From positions 496,001 to 560,000 of the forward strand of contig OZ251245.1 of the NCBI GenBank assembly GCA_965240325.2: DNA of 64,000 bases, written 5' to 3'. This document shows, piece by piece, positions 5,683 to 17,738 of the stretch (the stretch's first letter is position 1; each line of letters starts with the position of its first letter). The notes under the pieces are model-generated. The model searched no databases, was not told the origin of the DNA, and saw only the letters and a program-made list of their open reading frames with translations. Both the position numbers and the translations under genes were made by a program. The stretch comes from Rebecca billardiae RCC1528 (taxonomy: Eukaryota; Protista; Haptophyta).

Positions 5683-8600
5683 ATGCCCACCGGCGCGACG
5701 ACGACGGCGCCGCCGCCATCGTACGCCCAGCCGCGCGCCTACGGCGGGGCGACATCGACGCCGCAGCGCTCCTCGCGCCAGGCCGCTCGCGAGCAGACGG
5801 CTCAGCTCGTCTCGCGCGCCGCGGCGGCCACGCGCTCGGCGCGCCGCTCGTCGCGCGAGGCGGCGGTTCTCATGCGCCAGTCGCGCGGCGGCGCTGAGCC
5901 ATCGACGCCGGGTGGCGTGGGCGGCTCGAGCGGCCGCGTCAGCCCGGCGTCGAGCGCGCCGTACGCCCCGCAGCTGCGCGACCGGCGCACCTCGACCACG
6001 CCCGCGGCCGCGCCCGCCGCCGCCGACCCGCTCGAGGGGGCGCTGCGCGGCTGGGAGGGCGAGCCCCCGCCGCGCGAGCTGCTCGTGCTGCCGGTGCCGC
6101 CGCGCCCGTCGGCGCGCGCGATGACGCCGGCGGGCGGCTCGTTCCGTGCCGCCGCGCCCTCGCGCTCGCGCTCGCCCGCGCCACCCGCGCCGGCGTCCAC
6201 CGCGCCACCGGTGGCCGGCGCGCGCCGGCCAAGCCTCGGCTCGGCGCGTGATCGCTCCGCCTCGCCACCGTCCGAGCGCGGCGCTGTGGAGCCCGCGCGC
6301 GGCTCGGTGGACAGCCTCGGCGCGTCGGGCTCGCGGCGCAACTCGCTCGGCGGCGAGCGCGCCTCCCCGCCCTCGCCGTCCTCGCGGCTGGGCGCGGCCG
6401 AGCTCGACGGCGAGCACGGCGGCGACGCGGTGGCGCGAGCGCGCGCGCGCAGGCGCTCGGTGACGGACGCGCTCGACCAAGCGTCGCGCGAGAACGTGCT
6501 CGCGGCGTCGCGCGCGGTGGACGGCGGGCTGCCTTCGCCCACGCTGAGCCAGGCGGCGCGCTCGGTCTCCGTGCGCGTGCACCTCGACCACGCGCTCGAG
6601 GGGCGGCCGCGCGCGCCGTCGCCCGGCGCGGCGCCGCCGCACGATCGCGCGGCCGCGCCGCTCGGCGGCCGCGCGGCCTCGGCCGACGCCGACGCCGATC
6701 GGCTCTCGCCGCTCGGCGCGGCGGGCCAGCGCGCGGCGCTGCCCGCGCGCCCGTCGACCGCGCCCGCCGCGCCGCCGTCCGACGACGCCGCGCACGTCGC
6801 CGCCCTGCTCCAGCTCGCCGCCGGCGGCTCGTTCGGCGCCTCGCTCGGCGGGGCCCACCGCCCGGCCGCACCCGACGCCTACCTGCCGCGGGGCGGCGCG
6901 CTGCAGCAGCGGCCGCCGGCGCTCGCGGGGCGCGCCGAGGGCGAGGGCGGCGTGCGGGGCTCGGCGCGCGCGCGCGCGCTCGGCGCGGAGGGCGGCGCGC
7001 CGCCCGGCCCGCGCGCGCGCCGCGCCCTCAGCCTCTCCGTCGCCAACGGCCCGTGGGTGCCGCACGCCGTCGCGTCCACGTGGCCGCCGCCGCGCGCCGC
7101 GTTCTCGCTCGTGTCGAGCGCGGACGCGCTGCCGCGCGCGCGCGAGGTGTCGGCCACGTCGATCCAGGCGGCGGCGCGGGGCAAGGCGGAGCGCGCGGCG
7201 CTGGCGGACGCGCTGCGCTCGGAGATCGAGGACGAGCTCACCATCCGCGCGCTCTCCGCCTCCGGCTCGGGGCCCGACTCCGCCGCGGGCCAGATGGCGG
7301 CCACGCTGGGCGCGCTGCGCTCCGCGCACGCGGCCGAGGCGGCCGAGGCGGAGGCGGCCGCCGCCGAGGCGGCCGCCGCGGCGGAGCGCTCGCGCGTGGC
7401 GGAGGCGCGCGCGGCGAAGGAGCAGGCGGAGGCGGTGGAGGCCGCGCGTGTCGCCGCGCTGGCCGACGCCGACGCCGCCGCGCAGCGCGCCGCCGTCGAG
7501 CGCGAGGCGCGCGAGGCGGCGGCCGCGCGGCGCGCGGCCGACGCCGCCGCCGCCGCCGCCGCGGACGCGGACGCGGCCGCCGCGCGCGAGGCGGCGGAGG
7601 CGGCGGAGGCGGCGCGCGCGGCGGAGGCGGCGCGCGAGGCGGCGGTGCGCGCGATCGTGAACGAGCTCCTCGAGCGCACCGAGGCCACCATCGCCGCCGA
7701 CGAGGAGCGCCGCGCGCGCGCCGCGGCCGCGGCCGCGCGCGCGGCCGCGGCGCGCGAGGCGGCCGAGGCGGAGGCGGCGGCCGCCGCCGCCGCCGACGCG
7801 GCGCGCGCGCGCGAGGCGGCGGCGGCGGCGGAGCGCAAGGAGGCGGCGGAGGCGGCGGAGGCGGGCGCGCTGGCCGAGGCCGCCGAGGCCGCCGCGCGCG
7901 AGTCCGCCGCGCGCCTCGCCGACGCCGACGCCGCCGCCGCGGCCGGCGGCGCGCCCGCCGCAGCCGCCGCGTCCGCGCTGCGCGCGGCCGCGCGCGAGGA
8001 CGCTGCGGCGGCGCGGCGCGCGCGCGCGAGCGCCGAGCGCGAGGGTGCGGAGGCGCGCGCGGCGCGCGCGGCGCTCGAGGGCGCGCGCGCGGCGGAGGCG
8101 CGGGCGGACGCCGCGGCGGCGAAGGAGGCGGCCGAGGCCGACGCCGCGACGCGCGAGCACGCGGAGGCGAGCGCCGCGGCCGAGCGCGCGGCCGCGGCCG
8201 CGGCGCAGGAGGCGGCCGAGGCCGAGGCGGCGGCCGCCGCCGCCGCCGACGCGGAGGCGCGCGCGGTGCGGCTGGCGCAGGTGGAGGAGAAGGAGGCGAG
8301 GGAGGCGGCGGACGCCGCCGCCGAGCGCGCGCGCGCGCTGCTCGCCGCCTCCGCCGCGCGCGACAACGCCGAGCGCGAGGCCCGCGAGGAGGCGGACGCG
8401 CGCGCGGGCGCGCGCGCCGCGGACGCGCGCGCCGACGCCGCGCGCCGCGCGGCGGCTGTCGAGGCGGCCGAGGCGGCCGAGGCGGCGGAGGGCGCGCGGC
8501 GCGCGCGCGCGGAGGCGGAGGCGAGCGCGGCGCGCGCGCTCGTCGAGTCCGCCGAGGCCGAAGGCGCACGCCGCGCCCTCGCCGCCGCCGAGGTGCGCCG

Positions 8601-10746
8601 CGCCGCGCAGCGCCGCGCAGCGCCGCGCAGCGCCGCGCAGCGCCGCGCAGCGCCGCGCAGCGCCGCGCAGCGCCGCGCAGCGCCGCGCCGCCGACCACAA
8701 CCGCCGCCGCGCGCCGACCAGCGCCGCCCGCCCGACCGCGCGGCGCTCACACGCGCCATCCATCCGGCTGGGCGTTGCGCCCGCAGGCCATCCTCGCGGG
8801 CGCGCCCGCGGCCCTGCCCGGCACCGTCCCCGCGCCCGTCGTCGCCGCCGCCGCCGCCGCCGCCTCGCCGCGGGCGCCGCCGGCAGGGGGAGCGCACGCG
8901 CAGCCGGCCGGCCGCGCCGCGCCGCCTGCGCTCCTCGAGGCGGCACCGGCGCCCGCGCCCGCCGCGGTGGAGGCGGCGAACGCCGCGGCGGCGGCGGCGG
9001 TGGCGGCGGCGGCGGAGCGCGCGTGGGCGCTCCCGTCCGACGACCCGTTCAGCTCGCCCTTCGTCTCGTGGGCCGCGGTGCGCGAGGCCGTCCGCCAGAC
9101 CCACCAGATGGTGCGCACCACACCGCGCCACACACCACCACCGCGCCGCGCCGAACCGCACCGTGCTGCTGCACCGCGCTGCTGCACCGCGCTGCTGCAC
9201 CGCGCCGCTGCACCGCGCCGCTGCGCGCGTGCGGCGCCTGTCCGGCCGAGTGCGGAGGCGGTGTCGTCCGATTGCGCGCGCGACACACACGCGCCCACCC
9301 ACACCCACACACACCCACACACACACACGGCGCGCGCGAGGTGGGCGGCATGCGCGCGCCGCGCTCTGAATGCACGCGCGCGCGCGCGGCGCACGTGCGC
9401 AGGTGGGCGAGCTGGAGCAGCGCTCGAGTGCCCCCGCGCTGGCCGAGCGCTCGCCCCACTCGCCGCACGCAGCCGTGCACACCGCGCGCGCCCCCGACGC
9501 CGGCCCCGGCGCGCGCGTGCTCGGAGCAAGGGGCGCGCCGCACGCCGACGGCTCAGCCGAGGGCGCACTGCTCAGCCTGGGCGGCCTGAACGCCGGGCTG
9601 CAGCAGGCGGCGCGCGCGATCGCCGAGCTGGGGGACAGCTGCGCCGCCGCGCTCACGCTCGCCGGCACGCACTCGGTGGGCGCGGGCGGGGCGCGCGCGC
9701 CGGCCGGCGCGTCGGGCCGCGCGCCCGCGCCCGCGCAGCAGCAGCCCGCGCCGCGCGCGCCTTGGGCGGCAGAGGCGCATCCGCCGGGCACGCGCGCGGC
9801 CGCGCCGGCGGCGGCCTCGGCGAGCGCGCTCGGCGGCGGCTGCGCGCGCACGCCCGCGGCCGGGGCGCCGGTGCCGCCGCCCGCCGCGCGCGCGCTGCAG
9901 CGCGCCGCCACGCACGAGCCGGGCTTGCTCGGCGCGCCGCACCGCGCCTCGGCTGCCGAGGCGGAGGCGCGCGCGCAGCCGCCAGCCGAGCAAGCCGCGC
10001 GCACGCCGCCCGGCTCTCAGTGGGCGTGCGGAGGCGCGCCGTACGCACGCGCGGGCGCGCAGCCGCCGCCGAGCGCGCACGCCGCCGCCGGCAGCTCGTT
10101 CGCCACGCCTCCGCCGCAGCCGCAGCCGCAGCCGCAGCCTGCGGCGCAGCGCGCGCACGACGCCGGGCTGACGCCGAGCAAGCCCGCGCGCCGAGGCTCG
10201 CACCTTGCGCACGGCGGCGCGCACTGCGCCACGCCGCCGCCCAGCTGCCCTGCCGGCAGCGTCGGTGGCTCCGTGCCCTCCACGCCGCGGAGCGTCGGCC
10301 CGCGGCTCGAGCAGTGGCGGCAGGCGCGCTTCCGGCTCACGGCGGTGATGCAGGTGCACGCGCTGCAGCCGCAGCAGCTCGGCGGCGCGGCCACGCCGGG
10401 CGCGCCGGCCGGCACGTGCGCGTACGCGCACGCGCCGGGTGCGGGCGGCTATGCGCCGCTCGGCAGCGGCTCTTGCTTCGCCACCCCGCCCTCGGCCTCG
10501 CCCTCGGCGCACTACGCCGCTGCCTCGTCCCATCTGCAGCCGCCCGGCACCCTCTCGCTGCCCATGCTGCCGCAGCCGTCGATGCCACATCATCATCACT
10601 ACGCCCAGCAGCAGCAGCAGCAGCCGGCAGGGCTGCCCTACTACTCGTACCCGCAGCAGCAGGCAGCTCAGCAGCAGTACCTGCCGCACCACCAACTCCA
10701 TCAAGCACCCGCCGGCTACCCGCATCACGGCGGCTACGACTACTGA
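5683..10746 (+). CDS. Low-complexity Ala/Glu/Arg-rich coiled-coil protein with IQ-like motif and Gln/Tyr/His-rich C-terminus; introns 8593-8786, 9111-9402
   Basis: Long ORF with SIQAAARGKAER and EAAEAA heptads. Two GTGCGC..CAG introns join three frames to the stop at 10746. Confidence 0.6.
8601..8690 (+). repeat. 10-bp intronic tandem repeat (CGCCGCGCAG)n
   Basis: About 8 consecutive copies just after the donor at 8593. Confidence 0.9.
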
Positions 10747-11130
10747 CGATGACGCGACTAATCTGGCGCCGGCCCGTGCCTGAGTCTGTAGTAGACGTAC
10801 TACGTAGTGCGCCGACGCGGACGGTAGTCGCGTAATAATTTATAATAACATCAGCATCAGCATCAGGGCTGATCGGGCCCGGCCCACTCTCCCGGGGCCG
10901 GGCGGTAGCACTCCCAGCCTGGGCGACTCGCTCACTCGGGGCACCGCTATGCCTATAGCGGACCCAGTGCCCGAGTCTGCTATGGGCACATCAGTGACTG
11001 ACAGCTGAGTGGGATATATCCGTCTATACTGCTGCTGCTCAGCTAGCTCCGAGTACCGAGCGCCAGGCAATAGGCATTCGGCATAGTCATCGTCACTCGA
11101 CTCAGCAGACACTTCACATCGAAATTCGAA

Positions 11131-14100
11131 TCACACATTCGTATCGGCCGGAGTAGTCCGGGAGTGCTGCGTGGCAGCCGAGTCAGCGCGCTGCCCGTCA
11201 CCGGGTGGTCCGGGTGCGCCTGCGCCAGAATGGCTGCCGTGCTCCGTATCGGCTGCCGACACGGCCGACGAGTGGACGCGCGCGCGCGAGCTGCCAAACC
11301 ACGAGGCCCACGGCGCCGCGCGGCGCGTCGCGCCCGTCGAGCTCGAGCGCGGGGAGCCGCTCGGCGCCTCCGCGCGCGCCTGCTGCTCCGCGTCCTTCTT
11401 GATGCTGGCGGAGCTCATCGCGTGCTCCGTGAGCCGCGGCGTGAAGCGGCCGCTGAAGTCGCCGGACTTGGCCTTGGGCGCCGTCGCGGCGGCGGCGCCC
11501 GCGGCGGCCTCCGCCTCGCTCTCGAGCCGCGTGGCGTGCGCAATGATCCGCCGGTTGAGCTCCTCGAGCCCGACCGAGTCCTTGTCGATGCAGTCGTCGA
11601 GGCCGGCGGCCTCGAACTCCTTGCGCTCGTCGCAGCCGGCCGGGTCGCCCGTCACGCCGATGATCAGCCCGCGGTACCCCTGCGCGCGGAGCTCGCGCGC
11701 GGCGCGCGCGCCTCCGAGCACGGGCATCTGGTTGTCGAGCACGATGGCGTGGAAGGAGGAGACGCGCGCGCGCTCCACCGCCGCGCGCCCGTCCGACACC
11801 TGCTCGTACTCGACGCCGATCGTGTCGAAGGTGGCGAGCGGCAGCGTCATGCGCACGAACTCGTCGTCCTCGGCGTGCAGCACGCGGTAGCCCATGCGCT
11901 TAGGCGCGGCGGGGTCGACGGGCGCGGAGGCGAGCGAGGGCGTGCGCTCCACCCGCGCCGAGCCGCCGTCGCGCGACGACGACGCGTCCTCGTCCGCCAG
12001 CGTGCAGTTGACGCTCATCTCGAACTCGGTGCCCTGGCCGTGGCCGGCGGAGCGGATCTCGAGCGAGGAGTCGTCGTGCAGCCGCAGCAGCTGGCGCACG
12101 ATGCTCAGGCCGAGGCCGGTGCCGCCGTTGCCCTGCAGCTGCCCGCGCCCCACCTGCGTGAACATGACGTTCTGGTGCAGCGCAGACAGCTCGCTCAGGC
12201 TCAGGCCCACGCCCTCGTCGCGCACCGAGACGAGCAGGACGACGCGCTCGCCCGGGGCGCCCGCCGCCTCCGCGCTACGCTCGGGTGGCGAGCGGCGGTG
12301 GGTCGACGGCGTGCCGCCGTTCGACGCGCTCGCGCCGAAGGAGGACGCGGCGACGGTGGACACGGCGGCGGTGGACACGGCGGCGTCGGAGGCCGCGCCG
12401 GCGTCGGCGCGCGCGTCGGCCGCGTCGGCCGCGCGCTGCGCGAGCGTCAGGCGCACCCACACGTTGGTCCCGCGGTCGGAGAACTTGATGGCGTTGCTCA
12501 GCCCGTTGTTCAGGCACTGCTGCATCCGGCGCAGGTCGCCCACCAGCGTGGGCAGCGCGCGCGCCTCCGCGAGCTCCGCGACCAGGTGCACGCCGCGCGC
12601 CTCGGCGAGCGCGCCGAGCGTGGCGAGCGCGCCCTTCAGCAGCTCGACCGGGCGGAAGGGCGCCATCACGAGGGTGAGCCGGCCGGCCTCGATGCGCTCA
12701 AAGTCGAGCATGTCCGAGACGATGTGCTCCATCAGCGCCGCGCACGTCTGCAGCGCCTCCACCTCGGACGTGACCGCGCGCAGCGCCGTGCCCTCCGGCT
12801 TGCGCGCGAGCACGGTCGCGAGCGACTGCACCGAGAGCAGCGGGCTGCGCAGGTCGTGCATCACCTGCGGGCGCGGGCGCGGAGGGGGCGGAGGGGCGCG
12901 CGGCCGCTCAGCGGCGGCAGCGCGCGCGGTGCAGCGCGCGCCACGCGGTGCGCGCGCGGTGCGTGCGCGACACGGTGCCGCGCGCCCACCATCCGGATGA
13001 GGCGCGAGCGCGCGCTCGCGGCCGCCTCCCTGCGCGTCTGCTCGAGCGCCTCCTGCTCGCGCTGCTGCTTGGCCGCGCGGCGCTCGCGCGCGAGCTGCCA
13101 CGCGCGGCGCGCGGCGAGCATGCTGCACGCGCCGATCAGCACCGTGCTCACCACCACCACCGAGATGAACATGGCGCGCATGTCGAAGATGGCCGCGGGC
13201 TCGGCCGGCGCTGCCGCGCCAGCGCCATCGTCGTCGGCGTCGGCGCCGCCGTCGGCGTCCGCGTCCGCGCTGCCCGTGTCGGCGCCGGCGTCGGCGCCGT
13301 CGGCGCCGGGCAGCCCGTCGAGCGGCGGCTCGAGCGCGCCGCCCGCGTAGTAGAAGGGCGCGAGCGCGTCGAGGTCCCACACGTCGCCGTCAAACGTCGC
13401 GGTGCTCGTGACGCTGAGCGTGCCGCTGGCGGGGTCGTGCCGCACGTTCTGCAGCACAAACGGAGAGGTGGACACGTCGCGCGTGCCCTGCGCGTCGAAG
13501 GCGATGGTGCCGCTCGCGCCGTCGAAGGACTGGCGCACGAGCGCGGGGAAGAGCGCGGAGCCCGTCGTCTCGCCGCCCGTCTCGCACAGCGCGAGCGCGA
13601 GCGCCGCCATCGCGTCGTACCCGAAGGCGGCGTAGATGCCGAGGGGCGAGTCGAAGCCCCACTCCACGTTCTCTGCAATCGAGCCGTTCGGGATCGTGAC
13701 GCGCGGCGCAAAGTCGGCCCAGCTGTGCGTGGGCCACTCGGCCTGGAGCGCGTCCCACCGCGTGTTGTTGTCGCGGCTGCCCGCCGCGTAGATCGCGACC
13801 GAGCCGTCGTAGTGCTCGCCGTGCGCCATGCTCTGGCCGTCGCGGAACTGCGAGCCGTCGGTGAAGATCCACTGCCGGCCCGCGCCGAGGAGGCCGCGCG
13901 CGGACGCGTGCTCGGCGATGGCGGGCAGCTCGACCGAGTTGGTCAGGGCGACGACGATGCGCGGCGGCGTGCCCCCGCCCCCGCTCGCGAGCGTGTCGAG
14001 CGCCGGGAACAGCGACGCGGGATCGCCGCCGAACGCGTACGGCACGGCGAGCGCCTGCACGTGCTGCGCCGCCAGCAGCCCCTCGAGCTTGGACGCAAAG

Positions 14101-14512
14101 TCGCGCCCGTAGTCGCCGTCCGAGTGGAGGATGGCGATGCGCCGCCAGCCGTGCTGCACGATGTACCGGCCGATCGCGTACATCAGCCCATCGTCCGACG
14201 GCACCGTCCGCGCGAACAGCGGGTACTTCTTCGTGTCGTCGAGCGAGGGCGACGTGCTCGACGCCGCGACCTGCACCGTGTCGAAGATGCCGCCGAGCAC
14301 GGCGAGGTCGCGCGAGCACGAGGAGTACGTCTCGCCGATGATCGCGCGCCAGCCGTCGTTCGCGACGCCCGCGGCGTAGCGCTGGATCGCGTCCGCGCAG
14401 TACCTGCGGCGCGCGGCGCGGCGGCGGGCGGAGCGCGCAGGGCGCGGCGCGAGCACGACGACAGCCGCGGTCAGGGGCCGGCGGGGCGCGCGACGCCGCG
14501 TCCGCGCGCGGC

Positions 14513-14544
<32 letters not shown>

Positions 14545-14809
14545 AGCGCGCGCACAGATCGGTGTCGACGAACTCCGCCTCGATCTGCACGTCGCACGCG
14601 CCGAGCGCGGCGAACGCCGGGCACACCAGTCCGTTCCGCTCGTTGAAGTGGCGCGCGGCGAGCAGCGCCATCATCGGGATCTGCCCGATCACGGGCGACT
14701 CGGGCGCGCGGATCGTGCCGAGCACGCCGACGGGCACCGTGCGCGCCGCCACGCGCCCGCCGAGCGCCACGAGCGCCGTCGTGAGGACCAGCGCATGCGT
14801 GGGACGCAT
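11131..14809 (-). CDS. Membrane hybrid histidine kinase: signal peptide + periplasmic-binding type 1/ANF-receptor (Venus flytrap) + TM + HisKA + HATPase + receiver; introns 14404-14555, 12865-12989
   Basis: VFT motifs AIIGETYSSCS, STSPSLDDTKKYPLFARTVPSD, GWRRIAILHSDGDYG, AAFGYDA, FDGASGTIAFD. TM MFISVVVVSTVLIGACSMLA. H-box MHDLRSPL, N-box NGLSNAIKFS, DEGVG, GTGLGLSI. Receiver AEDD..LDNQMP..GVTG..K. Confidence 0.88.
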
Positions 14810-16107
14810 GTGGATAGCGCTGCACTACGCGGTGAGCAGAGCGCCTCGGTGGCGAAGTGGGCCTTCCGGCAGTGTGACGAGCGACGAAGGCGCGACCAAG
14901 GAGGCGGGCGCCCGCCCGCGCGGGCTCCCTGAGTATTAATATGAGTGATAGCAATGCGGGTACCTGTCCTTGGCGCGATGCTACTGCAGCCGGTTTGGCG
15001 GGGAATCTCCGAATGATCTGTAGTCGGCAATTTTCGTTTATGACGCTTTCCACGAAAGAGTCTTGGGGCTAAAAACGACGTCTCGTAAGGCTTGATGAGG
15101 TTTGTGGGTGGCTTGCTTGAGCGACATTCGCCGCGTATATGGGGGTACTTGAAATATTCGTATACGGAGATTGCGCCGATATATTCAGCGAGATACAATC
15201 TGTCGACATTTCACTTTTCGGCTTCTCACTCGGCGGCGGTTGGTATATTATGCATGATCATCATATGGGGGTACTTAGCTAGCTCAGGAGAATTTGATGA
15301 GAATGAGAATCTCCACCGCCAGGTGAACGAACCCACCAGCCTCTCCGCAGCGGCAGGCGCACGTGCGCACAGCCGCCCCCGCCTGTGGGCCACTGTGCCT
15401 GTGACGCGCGCGCCGCGCGGCACGACCGCGTGTCAATATTCATCAACTGTTATTCACCGCCAGCTGCAGCAGTTGACCGTGGTCGCTGGTGCGGAGGGCA
15501 CGGCGTGCACGCCCTCATGGCTCCGGCCGGCGCGCTCGGGCCCGAGACCCGGACCGCGGGGCGTGGTGCTGCAGGCGGGCCACGGTTACGGCTGGTAGTG
15601 CAGCGCTCCGACTCCGGGCCTGTCGGCGCCGGCACGCGGCTAAGTCTTCACTTCAGAGCCCGCTGCACTGTTCAGATGTGCTCGCGAGTTGTAAGGGTCG
15701 CCCTCCCGGCCGCGGCGCCCAGCAGTTCAGTCAGATTCCCGCAAGCGCCAAGCCCGCGAATATTCACGGACTCAGGTCCAGGATGACTGGCGCTGCGCGC
15801 GGCCGCCGCGCCAGCTCACCCATTGCGCGATTACTGTGACTCAGTGTGACACCTGATTTCGTTCCCGCTTTGGATGGGAGGTCCTCCTGCCACCGGACGC
15901 AGCGGCGGATCCCGAGTGGTCCGGTCCGGGCCGGGCCTCCGATCAGGCCTCAGGCTCCCCGTGAATGCTGAAGGCGTGCCGATGCGGTGCCGACTGGTGG
16001 CAAACATGCCGAGCAGTGATCTTCGGAGTAGTCACTATATTCATCGAATTCATCGATCGTGCGCGGTCGCGGCGCGGCGACCCGTCACTGCCATCAGCCA
16101 TCAGGCA

Positions 16108-17481
16108 TCACGGATTGGCCGCGCTCGCAGCAGCGCAGCAGGCCCGTTCGCCCGTACGAGACGTCGCGAGGGAGGGACCGCCGCCCGCTGGTGCCCAGAC
16201 GACCGCTCCCGTGTCCACTTGGCCCGCATACGCACCTGCAGTGCACCGTGTGGGCACTTGGATGCGCAGTGGGCAGTGCCAGTGGCAGCGCAGCATGGCC
16301 ATGCACCACACCCGCCCGGTGCGGCAGCCGCGAGGCACGCGCCACCGGCCGTGGACGACTTGCCATCCAGCATCGCGCACCGGCACCGGCTTGCCGATGG
16401 CTCCCATTAGCGGCAGGCCGTTCGAAGCCCGGCGAGCAGCTCCGCTGGCGAGCACGCGCGCGAAGACGTCGCTGTCGACATTCCCGCCGCACAGTACGAA
16501 GCCCGCCACCGCCGCGCCGCGTGCGCTCGCCGCCTCCGCCTTGAGCGCGGCGTACCCGGCCGCGCCCGCGCCCTCGGCGACGTTGTGCGTCGCGCGGAAG
16601 ATCGCGCGCATCGCGTCCTCGACCGCGTCGTCGTCGACGGTGACCACGCGCAGCGCGCGCGCTGCGAGCAGCTCGAGCGCGCCCGCGTCCGGCTGGCGGC
16701 ACGCCATCCCGTCCGCGATGCGCGTCGTGGCGGCGTGCGCGATGCACGCGCCGCGCGCGAGGCTGAGCGCGTACGCGGGCGCGGCCGTGGACACCACGCC
16801 CACCACCTCGCACGCGTGGCCGAGTGCGTCCTTCGCCGCGAGCGCGCCGCACACGCCCGAGCCCAGCCCGATCGGCACGTACAGCCGCTGCAGCCGCGGC
16901 GCCGCCTGCAGCAGCTCGAGCGCCCACGTGCCCACGCCCGCCACGAGCAACGGGTGGAAGGAGGGCACGAGGTGGAGCGCGGCGCTGCCGCGCGCGAGCG
17001 CGTGCGCGTGCTCAAGTGCGTCCTGGAAGTCCTCGCCGTGCTCGACCAGCTGCGCACCGAGCGACGCCATCGCCGCGTTCTTCTCCGCCGAGTTGGCGCG
17101 CGGCACGACGATCGTGCACGAGAGGCCGCCGAGCCGCGCCGCGAGCGCGAGCGACTGGCCGTGGTTGCCGCGCGTCGCGGCGACGAGGCCGCGCACTTCC
17201 GGGTGTGCGCGCCTGAGCCAGTCGACGTACACCAGGCCGCCGCGCACCTTGAACGCGCCGACGCGCGTGTGGTTCTCGTGCTTGACCCACACCTCCGCGC
17301 AGCCCGCGTCCTGCGCGAGGAGCGGCCACGCGTACTGCGGCGTGGGCGGCACGGTCGTGCGGATGAGTCGAGCCGCGTCGCGCAGCTCCGCGAGCCGCGG
17401 CAGGGCCAGCGAGTGCTTCGCGCGCCGCCGCGCCGCGGGCAGCGCCCCCGCGTGCGCGGCGCGGCGCAGCATGGCCGCCAT
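16108..17481 (-). CDS. PLP-dependent threonine/serine dehydratase, bacterial-like, intronless
   Basis: KHENHTRVGAFKVRGG (PLP lysine), ATRGNHGQS, VPIGLGSG, IADGMA, EGAGAA, CGGNVD. The domain ends near 16450 and the C-terminal tail to 16108 is uncertain. Confidence 0.85.
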   Translation of the reverse strand: MAAMLRRAAHAGALPAARRRAKHSLALPRLAELRDAARLIRTTVPPTPQYAWPLLAQDAGCAEVWVKHENHTRVGAFKVRGGLVYVDWLRRAHPEVRGLVAATRGNHGQSLALAARLGGLSCTIVVPRANSAEKNAAMASLGAQLVEHGEDFQDALEHAHALARGSAALHLVPSFHPLLVAGVGTWALELLQAAPRLQRLYVPIGLGSGVCGALAAKDALGHACEVVGVVSTAAPAYALSLARGACIAHAATTRIADGMACRQPDAGALELLAARALRVVTVDDDAVEDAMRAIFRATHNVAEGAGAAGYAALKAEAASARGAAVAGFVLCGGNVDSDVFARVLASGAARRASNGLPLMGAIGKPVPVRDAGWQVVHGRWRVPRGCRTGRVWCMAMLRCHWHCPLRIQVPTRCTAGAYAGQVDTGAVVWAPAGGGPSLATSRTGERACCAAASAANP

Positions 17482-17738
17482 GGACGGACGTCGTAACCAA
17501 TTTCTGTACGTAATAAGTATTGTACCCGTATACAAGTTTCCTGGGTAGCAGTACTCGATGACGACGATCATATATATATATATATATATCATCATCATCA
17601 TCTCAATATCTCATACGCATACCACATCATCTTGATGATGATCTGGTGTTACTGAGACTACCACTGTACTAGTACGCTACGTCGACCGTAAACATTTGTC
17701 AATTGTCGCGTCATCAGCGGCGCACGTCCCACGTGTCG

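Follow-up and report, generated by a model that had tools for sequence, protein, structure and literature searches.

Among eukaryotic histidine kinases, a chemical ligand is known for only a few; the signals concerned are mainly ethylene, cytokinin and a small number from Dictyostelium. The sensors recorded in the main survey of sensor kinases from eukaryotes are of the CHASE, ethylene, NarX-like, phytochrome, PAS, GAF, and MASE1 types, and a binding-protein or flytrap sensor is not listed in it (PMC6324907). In bacteria, the coupling of a Venus flytrap to a histidine kinase is established by the BvgS family, BvgS itself being on by default (PMC4352136), and in the fructose sensor BT1754 of Bacteroides a periplasmic domain fused to a hybrid kinase binds the small molecule directly (PMC3404733). 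In invertebrates, Venus kinase receptors (VKRs) consist of a flytrap, one transmembrane helix and a tyrosine kinase (PMC2680970, PMC4026697); their alpha-amino-acid motif is partly kept, and recombinant VKR is activated by L-arginine (PMC2680970). The gene described here lies on contig OZ251245.1 of the haptophyte Rebecca billardiae RCC1528 (GCA_965240325.2), in a 64,000-nucleotide stretch of very GC-rich eukaryotic DNA (positions 496,001 to 560,000, called the window below). Occupying 14809..11131 of the minus strand, it is predicted, with a probability of about 0.72, to be functional and to encode a type-I cell-surface receptor with a single membrane pass, in which a flytrap for an amino-acid-type ligand controls a phosphorelay, and which arose by a lineage-specific domain swap.

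The gene is intact and comprises three exons and 1133 codons, from the ATG at 14809 to the TGA stop at 11133-11131. All parts reported at 11131-14809 by an earlier first-pass annotation of this DNA, i.e., signal peptide, ANF-receptor domain, one transmembrane helix, HisKA, HATPase and receiver, were recovered on the minus strand. Four Pfam domains exceed the curated cut-offs: ANF_receptor (PF01094; 2.1e-27, 96.5 bits, cut-off 25.4) in exon 2, and HisKA (PF00512; 4.2e-08), HATPase_c (PF02518; 2e-15), and Response_reg (PF00072; 2.3e-10) in exon 3. No further Pfam family was found in the gene by the exon-by-exon scan. The N-terminus MRPTHALVLTTALVALGGRVAA|RTV resembles a signal peptide (residues 1-22, 14744-14809) and precedes the flytrap, which extends to about 13323; the ectodomain has two N-glycosylation sequons, NNT and NGS. 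An acidic, flexible Gly/Ala/Asp stalk (13179-13322) leads to the transmembrane helix (13110-13178, residues ~494-516), exactly one being detected in a Kyte-Doolittle scan, and a charged helical linker of 40 residues (12990-13109), ending in ...ARSRLIRM at the start of the HisKA helix, runs straight into the DHp helix with His559. No HAMP or PAS domain was found between the transmembrane helix and DHp. The DHp/HisKA domain (12682-12864) has the H-box HDLRSPL with the phospho-acceptor His559 (codon 12856-12858), which aligns with the H-boxes of related kinases. In HATPase_c (11995-12552) the N (NNGLSNAIKF), G1 (DEGVGL), F (MFTQV), and G2 (GNGGTGLGL) boxes are intact and form invariant alignment columns, and the receiver (11554-11883) retains EDD888-890 with the acidic pair D889/D890, the phospho-Asp D933 (codon 11734-11736), T961, and K984.

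The protein thus has the HisKA with H-box His, the four-box HATPase_c and the C-terminal receiver of hybrid histidine kinases, together with the family fold and the five alpha-amino-acid residues of ANF_receptor flytraps. Whether judged by sequence, by profile or by predicted fold, the closest flytraps are those of class C G protein-coupled receptors (GPCRs; mGluR, GABA-B, CaSR, T1R), in which the five residues are conserved, but the window protein has no match to 7tm_3 (PF00003) and no cysteine-rich domain, and a single hydrophobic helix takes the place of the seven-helix domain. With BvgS and EvgS it shares an extracytoplasmic flytrap, a transmembrane helix, a hybrid kinase with receiver, and a predicted mechanical signal via long helices (PMC4352136). 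The BvgS flytraps, however, are a tandem pair of type-2 domains (SBP_bac_3) followed by PAS and a terminal Hpt, whereas the window protein has a single type-1, class-C-type flytrap unrelated in sequence, is encoded by a spliced eukaryotic gene, and gives no Pfam match to PF00497, PAS or Hpt; kinases with SBP_bac_3 from bacteria are found only among the distant matches of the kinase. BT1754 and the Bacteroidota clusters labeled Peripla_BP_4 or Peripla_BP_1 plus HisKA, whose type-1 fold is taken from these Pfam labels, similarly have a ligand-binding domain, HisKA, HATPase, and receiver in one chain. BT1754 differs in its sugar-type binding domain (Peripla_BP_1/4), its AraC DNA-binding output and its bacterial origin. 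Proteins of the BT1754 type were considered as homologues and rejected, being weak look-alikes (scores up to 0.88) that did not appear in the HMMER searches. VKRs resemble the window protein in having a class-C-type flytrap without a cysteine-rich domain, one transmembrane helix and an intracellular kinase, and in their dimeric state, which is probable here. Their output is an insulin-receptor-like tyrosine kinase, a fold unrelated to the His-Asp phosphorelay, and no protein-kinase domain was matched in the window protein by Pfam, its output being HisKA/HATPase_c/receiver. Nor was there a Pfam match to the kinase-homology or guanylate cyclase domains of receptor guanylyl cyclases of the natriuretic peptide receptor type. 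CHASE kinases, including plant cytokinin receptors and proteins of Ectocarpus and diatoms (PMC6324907), are likewise eukaryotic transmembrane hybrid kinases with an extracellular sensor of small ligands, but with a different sensor fold flanked by two transmembrane helices instead of a signal peptide and one helix. BvgS, BT1754, and VKR are analogues, not relatives.

On the minus strand, the features reported earlier are spread over three open reading frames (ORFs), of which two are long and differ in frame (12861-15053 and 11131-13380) and the third is short (14471-14809). Exon 1 (14556..14809) carries the start codon, the signal peptide and the beginning of the flytrap, a strand-helix-strand reaching to ...FVDTDL, exon 2 (12990..14403) the remaining flytrap, stalk, transmembrane helix and linker, and exon 3 (11131..12864) the kinase, receiver and tail. 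Intron 1 (14404..14555; 152 nt, GT..AG, phase 2, GTGCGCGC...CCGCAG) lies inside the flytrap. Its removal is needed because exon 1 read through meets a stop codon, and splicing gives DTDL|YCADAI. Intron 2 (12865..12989; 125 nt, GT..AG, phase 0, GTGGGCGC...CCCGCAG) cuts the H-box (SRLIRM | VMHDLRSPL), so that neither half is a complete gene. The two introns have a common start, GTG(C/G)GCGC, and a common end, CGCAG. Of the two, the first-pass annotation had placed intron 2 correctly and did not mention intron 1. The GC content of third codon positions (GC3) is 0.95 in exon 1 and 0.95-0.975 over the exons, against about 0.5 at second positions; this periodicity is lost in both introns, and the flanks have 54-58% GC. 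The codon-position signal in the exons is far beyond chance.

The protein searches, for which single exons or unbroken ORFs served as queries, covered 1.84 billion representative proteins and 5.8 billion protein clusters and gave a single close relative, P0001. The architecture is therefore not common, and the outcomes named in the first-pass annotation as counting against it did not arise. P0001 is 51-53% identical to the window protein over exon 2, the value for the flytrap by itself being 59%. It originates from a metagenome contig of the Joint Genome Institute (JGI), L001, with 68% GC. L001 shows the same full architecture and is colinear with the first two exons and with three pieces of exon 3, the identities being 61% for exon 1, 51% for exon 2, 66% for the HisKA piece, 39% for the ATPase piece, 59% from the G2 box to the receiver, and 71% for the receiver alone. 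Across the junction of flytrap and kinase P0001 reads ...ARSRLIRTVMHDLRSPL... uninterrupted, with HATPase_c and receiver downstream on L001, and at the point of intron 2 both P0001 and another kinase, P0151, read SRLIRTVMHDLRSPL without a break. Intron 1 is common to L001 and the window (same codon, phase, and donor GTGCGCG), whereas intron 2 is lacking in L001, which has two introns at other places in the kinase. Every catalytic residue and every pocket residue is conserved in the window protein and in L001/P0001.

These data bear on the possibility that the two halves do not form one expressed protein, the gene being decayed or silent, or the fusion an artefact of assembly or annotation. Such an explanation would agree with the absence of the window gene from the protein databases searched and with the extremely small size of the family. 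It is improbable in view of the three open exons with GC3 of at least 0.95, the splitting of the HisKA helix itself by intron 2, which leaves neither half complete alone, and the occurrence on an independent contig of the same colinear gene with an uninterrupted junction, different intron positions elsewhere, and conserved catalytic and pocket residues. An assembly artefact, in particular, is ruled out because the entire architecture, with every catalytic residue, is preserved at the independent locus. The conservation in L001 argues for selection, and the flytrap-kinase fusion is, as judged from the two genes, genomic and conserved. At the genome level, the chimeric single-pass receptor linking a flytrap to a phosphorelay that had been proposed for this locus is therefore upheld by the intron cutting the H-box and by the intact reading of P0001/L001 at that point.

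Other members were sought with both halves of the gene. Word-index protein searches with the flytrap, which score only the 8000 candidates sharing most words, returned only P0001; the claim of rarity rests additionally on a full HMMER search, in which the best 150 of 1875 matching representative proteins (E up to 0.001) were inspected. Other fusions of ANF_receptor or Peripla_BP_6 with kinases are possible elsewhere, the best 150 of the 1875 having been viewed. A metagenome scan with the flytrap found no locus, L001 itself also being missed, and one with the kinase found seven loci, none of the seven with a flytrap. No cluster combining ANF_receptor and HisKA was found in the ESM Atlas, and no synteny of L001 or L002 with the window was seen. 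The protein P0155, encoded on L002, has a stalk, transmembrane helix and linker similar to those of the window protein and falls in the same receiver clade; it was rejected as a third member, the gene being truncated at the contig start and the clade also holding a CHASE-like kinase. In L001, L002, and P0153, bacterial-style gene calls read the introns through in frame, e.g., after SDML in HisKA, and the database proteins therefore have spurious inserts and truncated ends.

The flytrap finds its best solved relatives in the PDB, by sequence, in mGluR1/2/3, GABA-B2, and T1R3. A 26-sequence profile matched mGluR6/4/8/5 at 1e-36 to 1e-39 (mGluR6 5.6e-39), with CaSR and GABA-B1 among its further matches. 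The ectodomain was modelled with AlphaFold2 (pLDDT 87, pTM 0.86) on the relative P0001, which carries intron 1 read through in frame; low confidence was confined to the intron-coded loop, and the part equivalent to exon 1 was placed in the flytrap with pLDDT >90. In Foldseek the model best matched the flytraps of GABA-B1, mGluR1/2/3/5/8, and CaSR (E ~1e-22). The domain is a complete Venus flytrap of the class C GPCR type, with the bilobed type-1 periplasmic-binding fold. HMMER aligned Ser112, Thr135, Asp155, and Tyr183 with S165, T188, D208, and Y236 of mGluR1, and the profile alignment placed Asp267 (WIFTDGS) at the position of D318. These five residues (S112/T135/D155/Y183/D267) are invariant between the window protein and P0001. 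In mGluR1 the residues of this motif hold the amino-acid ligand by its carboxylate and its primary amine (PMC2680970). An L-alpha-amino acid or a close derivative would be the likeliest ligand, at roughly even odds, because all five residues are kept, and the initial guess of an amino-acid or GABA-like ligand fits the conserved S/T/D/Y/D motif.

The receptor could also be real with a different use of the flytrap, which might sense an ion, a sugar, a peptide, or a quorum-type or other metabolite, or act as a constitutive conformational clamp similar to the closed VFT2 of BvgS. This alternative is rather unlikely, though it carries appreciable weight: CaSR, whose flytrap has these backbone-binding residues too, ranks with the best matches by structure and by profile, and BvgS demonstrates that kinase-linked flytraps can signal without a classical agonist (PMC4352136). 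All five residues are nevertheless kept in both members although their flytraps are only ~59% identical, which fits selection on the site.

The two halves of the gene appear to have different histories. The best relatives of the kinase, at 35-45% identity, are found in Pavlovales sp. CCMP2436, in Pavlova transcriptomes and in metagenomes, and none of the 120 matches listed has a flytrap. At the N-terminus, P0182 has H-NOX and P0171 a CHASE domain of borderline score (24.9 bits, cut-off of the model 25), while others have no Pfam-recognised domain. P0151, encoded on L003 and the nearest relative in the receiver, has an ectodomain without a Pfam match that is 44% identical to that of P0171, each being ~300 residues long. 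In the receiver tree the window protein and L001 are paired (100/99) within a four-row clade (97/96) together with P0151, the CHASE-like transmembrane kinase, and the N-terminally cut P0155, and this clade lies within a eukaryotic clade apart from bacteria (100/100). By its matches the kinase belongs to a pavlovophyte-type family with other sensors (CHASE-like, H-NOX). Among the best 150 relatives of the flytrap none except P0001 has a kinase; those scanned have 7tm_3, PARP, Ephrin_rec_like/TNFR-like, and TRP-like regions as outputs, and the top multi-domain matches are fish CaSR arrays.

Since the kin of the kinase carry other sensors and the kin of the flytrap carry other outputs, the gene looks like a lineage-specific domain swap. 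A flytrap from the large repertoire of flytrap receptors of the alga would have replaced the ectodomain of a transmembrane hybrid kinase, the ectodomain of the nearest relative of the kinase being CHASE-like. As a separate observation, P0151 and P0171 are haptophyte-type transmembrane hybrid kinases having the H-box ARSRLIRTVMHDLRSPL in common with the flytrap kinase, and may represent an unrecognised CHASE-like receptor group. Among the closest relatives of the flytrap, P0006 from a Logan assembly (934 aa) combines ANF_receptor with a PARP catalytic domain (3.1e-11), a further uncommon output for a flytrap.

A bacterial origin, by contamination or by recent horizontal transfer of a sensor kinase with a periplasmic-binding protein, is very unlikely. 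The automatic JGI name of P0001 is ABC-type branched-chain amino-acid-binding protein, and language-model look-alikes among Bacteroidota Peripla_BP_4/HisKA proteins scored up to 0.88, at the level of leads only. Against these stand the two spliceosomal-type introns and the eukaryotic neighbour genes, the best matching of the flytrap to those of class C GPCRs by both sequence and fold, the grouping of kinase and receiver with proteins of Pavlovales and Pavlova, distinct from those of bacteria (100/100), and the lack of a kinase in the best 150 flytrap relatives other than P0001.

The working of the proposed receptor can be outlined from what is established about HisKA kinases and about flytraps of class C. 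Both histidine kinases and flytraps of that class form dimers, and the receptor is therefore probably a homodimer. A small ligand would close the outward-facing flytrap, and the closure would re-orient the two ectodomains of the dimer. The re-orientation would pass through the transmembrane helix and the continuous linker/DHp helix, without a HAMP or PAS relay, and shift DHp between kinase and phosphatase states. His559 would be phosphorylated in trans, and the phosphate would move from His559 to Asp933, then to a separate Hpt protein, and finally to a response regulator.

Several points weigh against an amino-acid receptor of this kind. The lone relative comes from a metagenome and could be a paralogue in a close relative instead of an independent lineage. 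Splicing and expression are deduced from comparison only, and the signal peptide was called by eye. The ATPase domain contains a low-complexity insert of 63 residues (12253-12441) between the N and G1 boxes, and no Hpt domain was found by Pfam in the protein, including the C-terminal tail. The assignment of the ligand draws on five backbone-binding residues that are common to many class-C flytraps, including ion-responsive or allosterically regulated ones.

Among eukaryotes the combination is new, and it is very rare, although its principle is already known in bacteria and animals. Full-text literature searches found no description of a eukaryotic flytrap-histidine kinase design, and the gene may tentatively be regarded as the first eukaryotic receptor with a class-C-type flytrap gating a His-Asp phosphorelay, and as a sensor by which a marine alga directly detects amino acids or dissolved organic nitrogen in its surroundings, a claim held with less than even confidence. 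In calling it possibly an undescribed algal receptor class, the first-pass annotation was right in so far as no describing paper was found, but with two genes known the term "receptor class" is a generous one. Its list of the usual eukaryotic partners of flytraps (class C GPCRs, iGluR/GLR, and receptor guanylyl cyclases) omitted VKRs, and the flytrap has been combined with many different outputs in this lineage.

If the proposed receptor is real, a flytrap of the animal-neurotransmitter type would act as a plug-in module driving a dimeric histidine kinase through a bare transmembrane-linker helix. The pocket can be compared with that of mGluR/GABA-B, a well-understood site, which makes identification of the ligand directly testable and would offer a route to the perception of amino acids or related organic nitrogen by haptophytes. 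The occurrence of the same kinase module with CHASE-like, H-NOX, and flytrap sensors would also provide a clean natural case of sensor swapping, useful for understanding and engineering signalling through single transmembrane helices. The importance of the finding is limited by its rarity, two genes being known.

Elsewhere in the window, the region 5683-10835 has 85% GC and overlapping ORFs of >1000 codons on both strands, rich in Ala, Arg, Gly, and Ser and of low complexity, with no Pfam matches on either strand. An ORF at 474-1901 of the plus strand has ACT_7 domains (2.9e-18), a regulatory fold binding small molecules and amino acids. The next gene upstream of the flytrap kinase (16111-17601, minus strand) encodes a pyridoxal phosphate (PLP)-dependent enzyme (PALP, 1.5e-56), its closest proteins in the PDB being threonine dehydratases (3.9e-33); the position of an amino-acid-catabolism gene beside a putative amino-acid sensor may be a coincidence. 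The flytrap kinase itself ends in a low-complexity tail of 135 residues (11134-11538), in which a weakly conserved patch, W.SW...SS..V..S...GSH (11134-11300, minus strand), aligns between the window protein and P0151, and partly P0155, and may be a docking motif.

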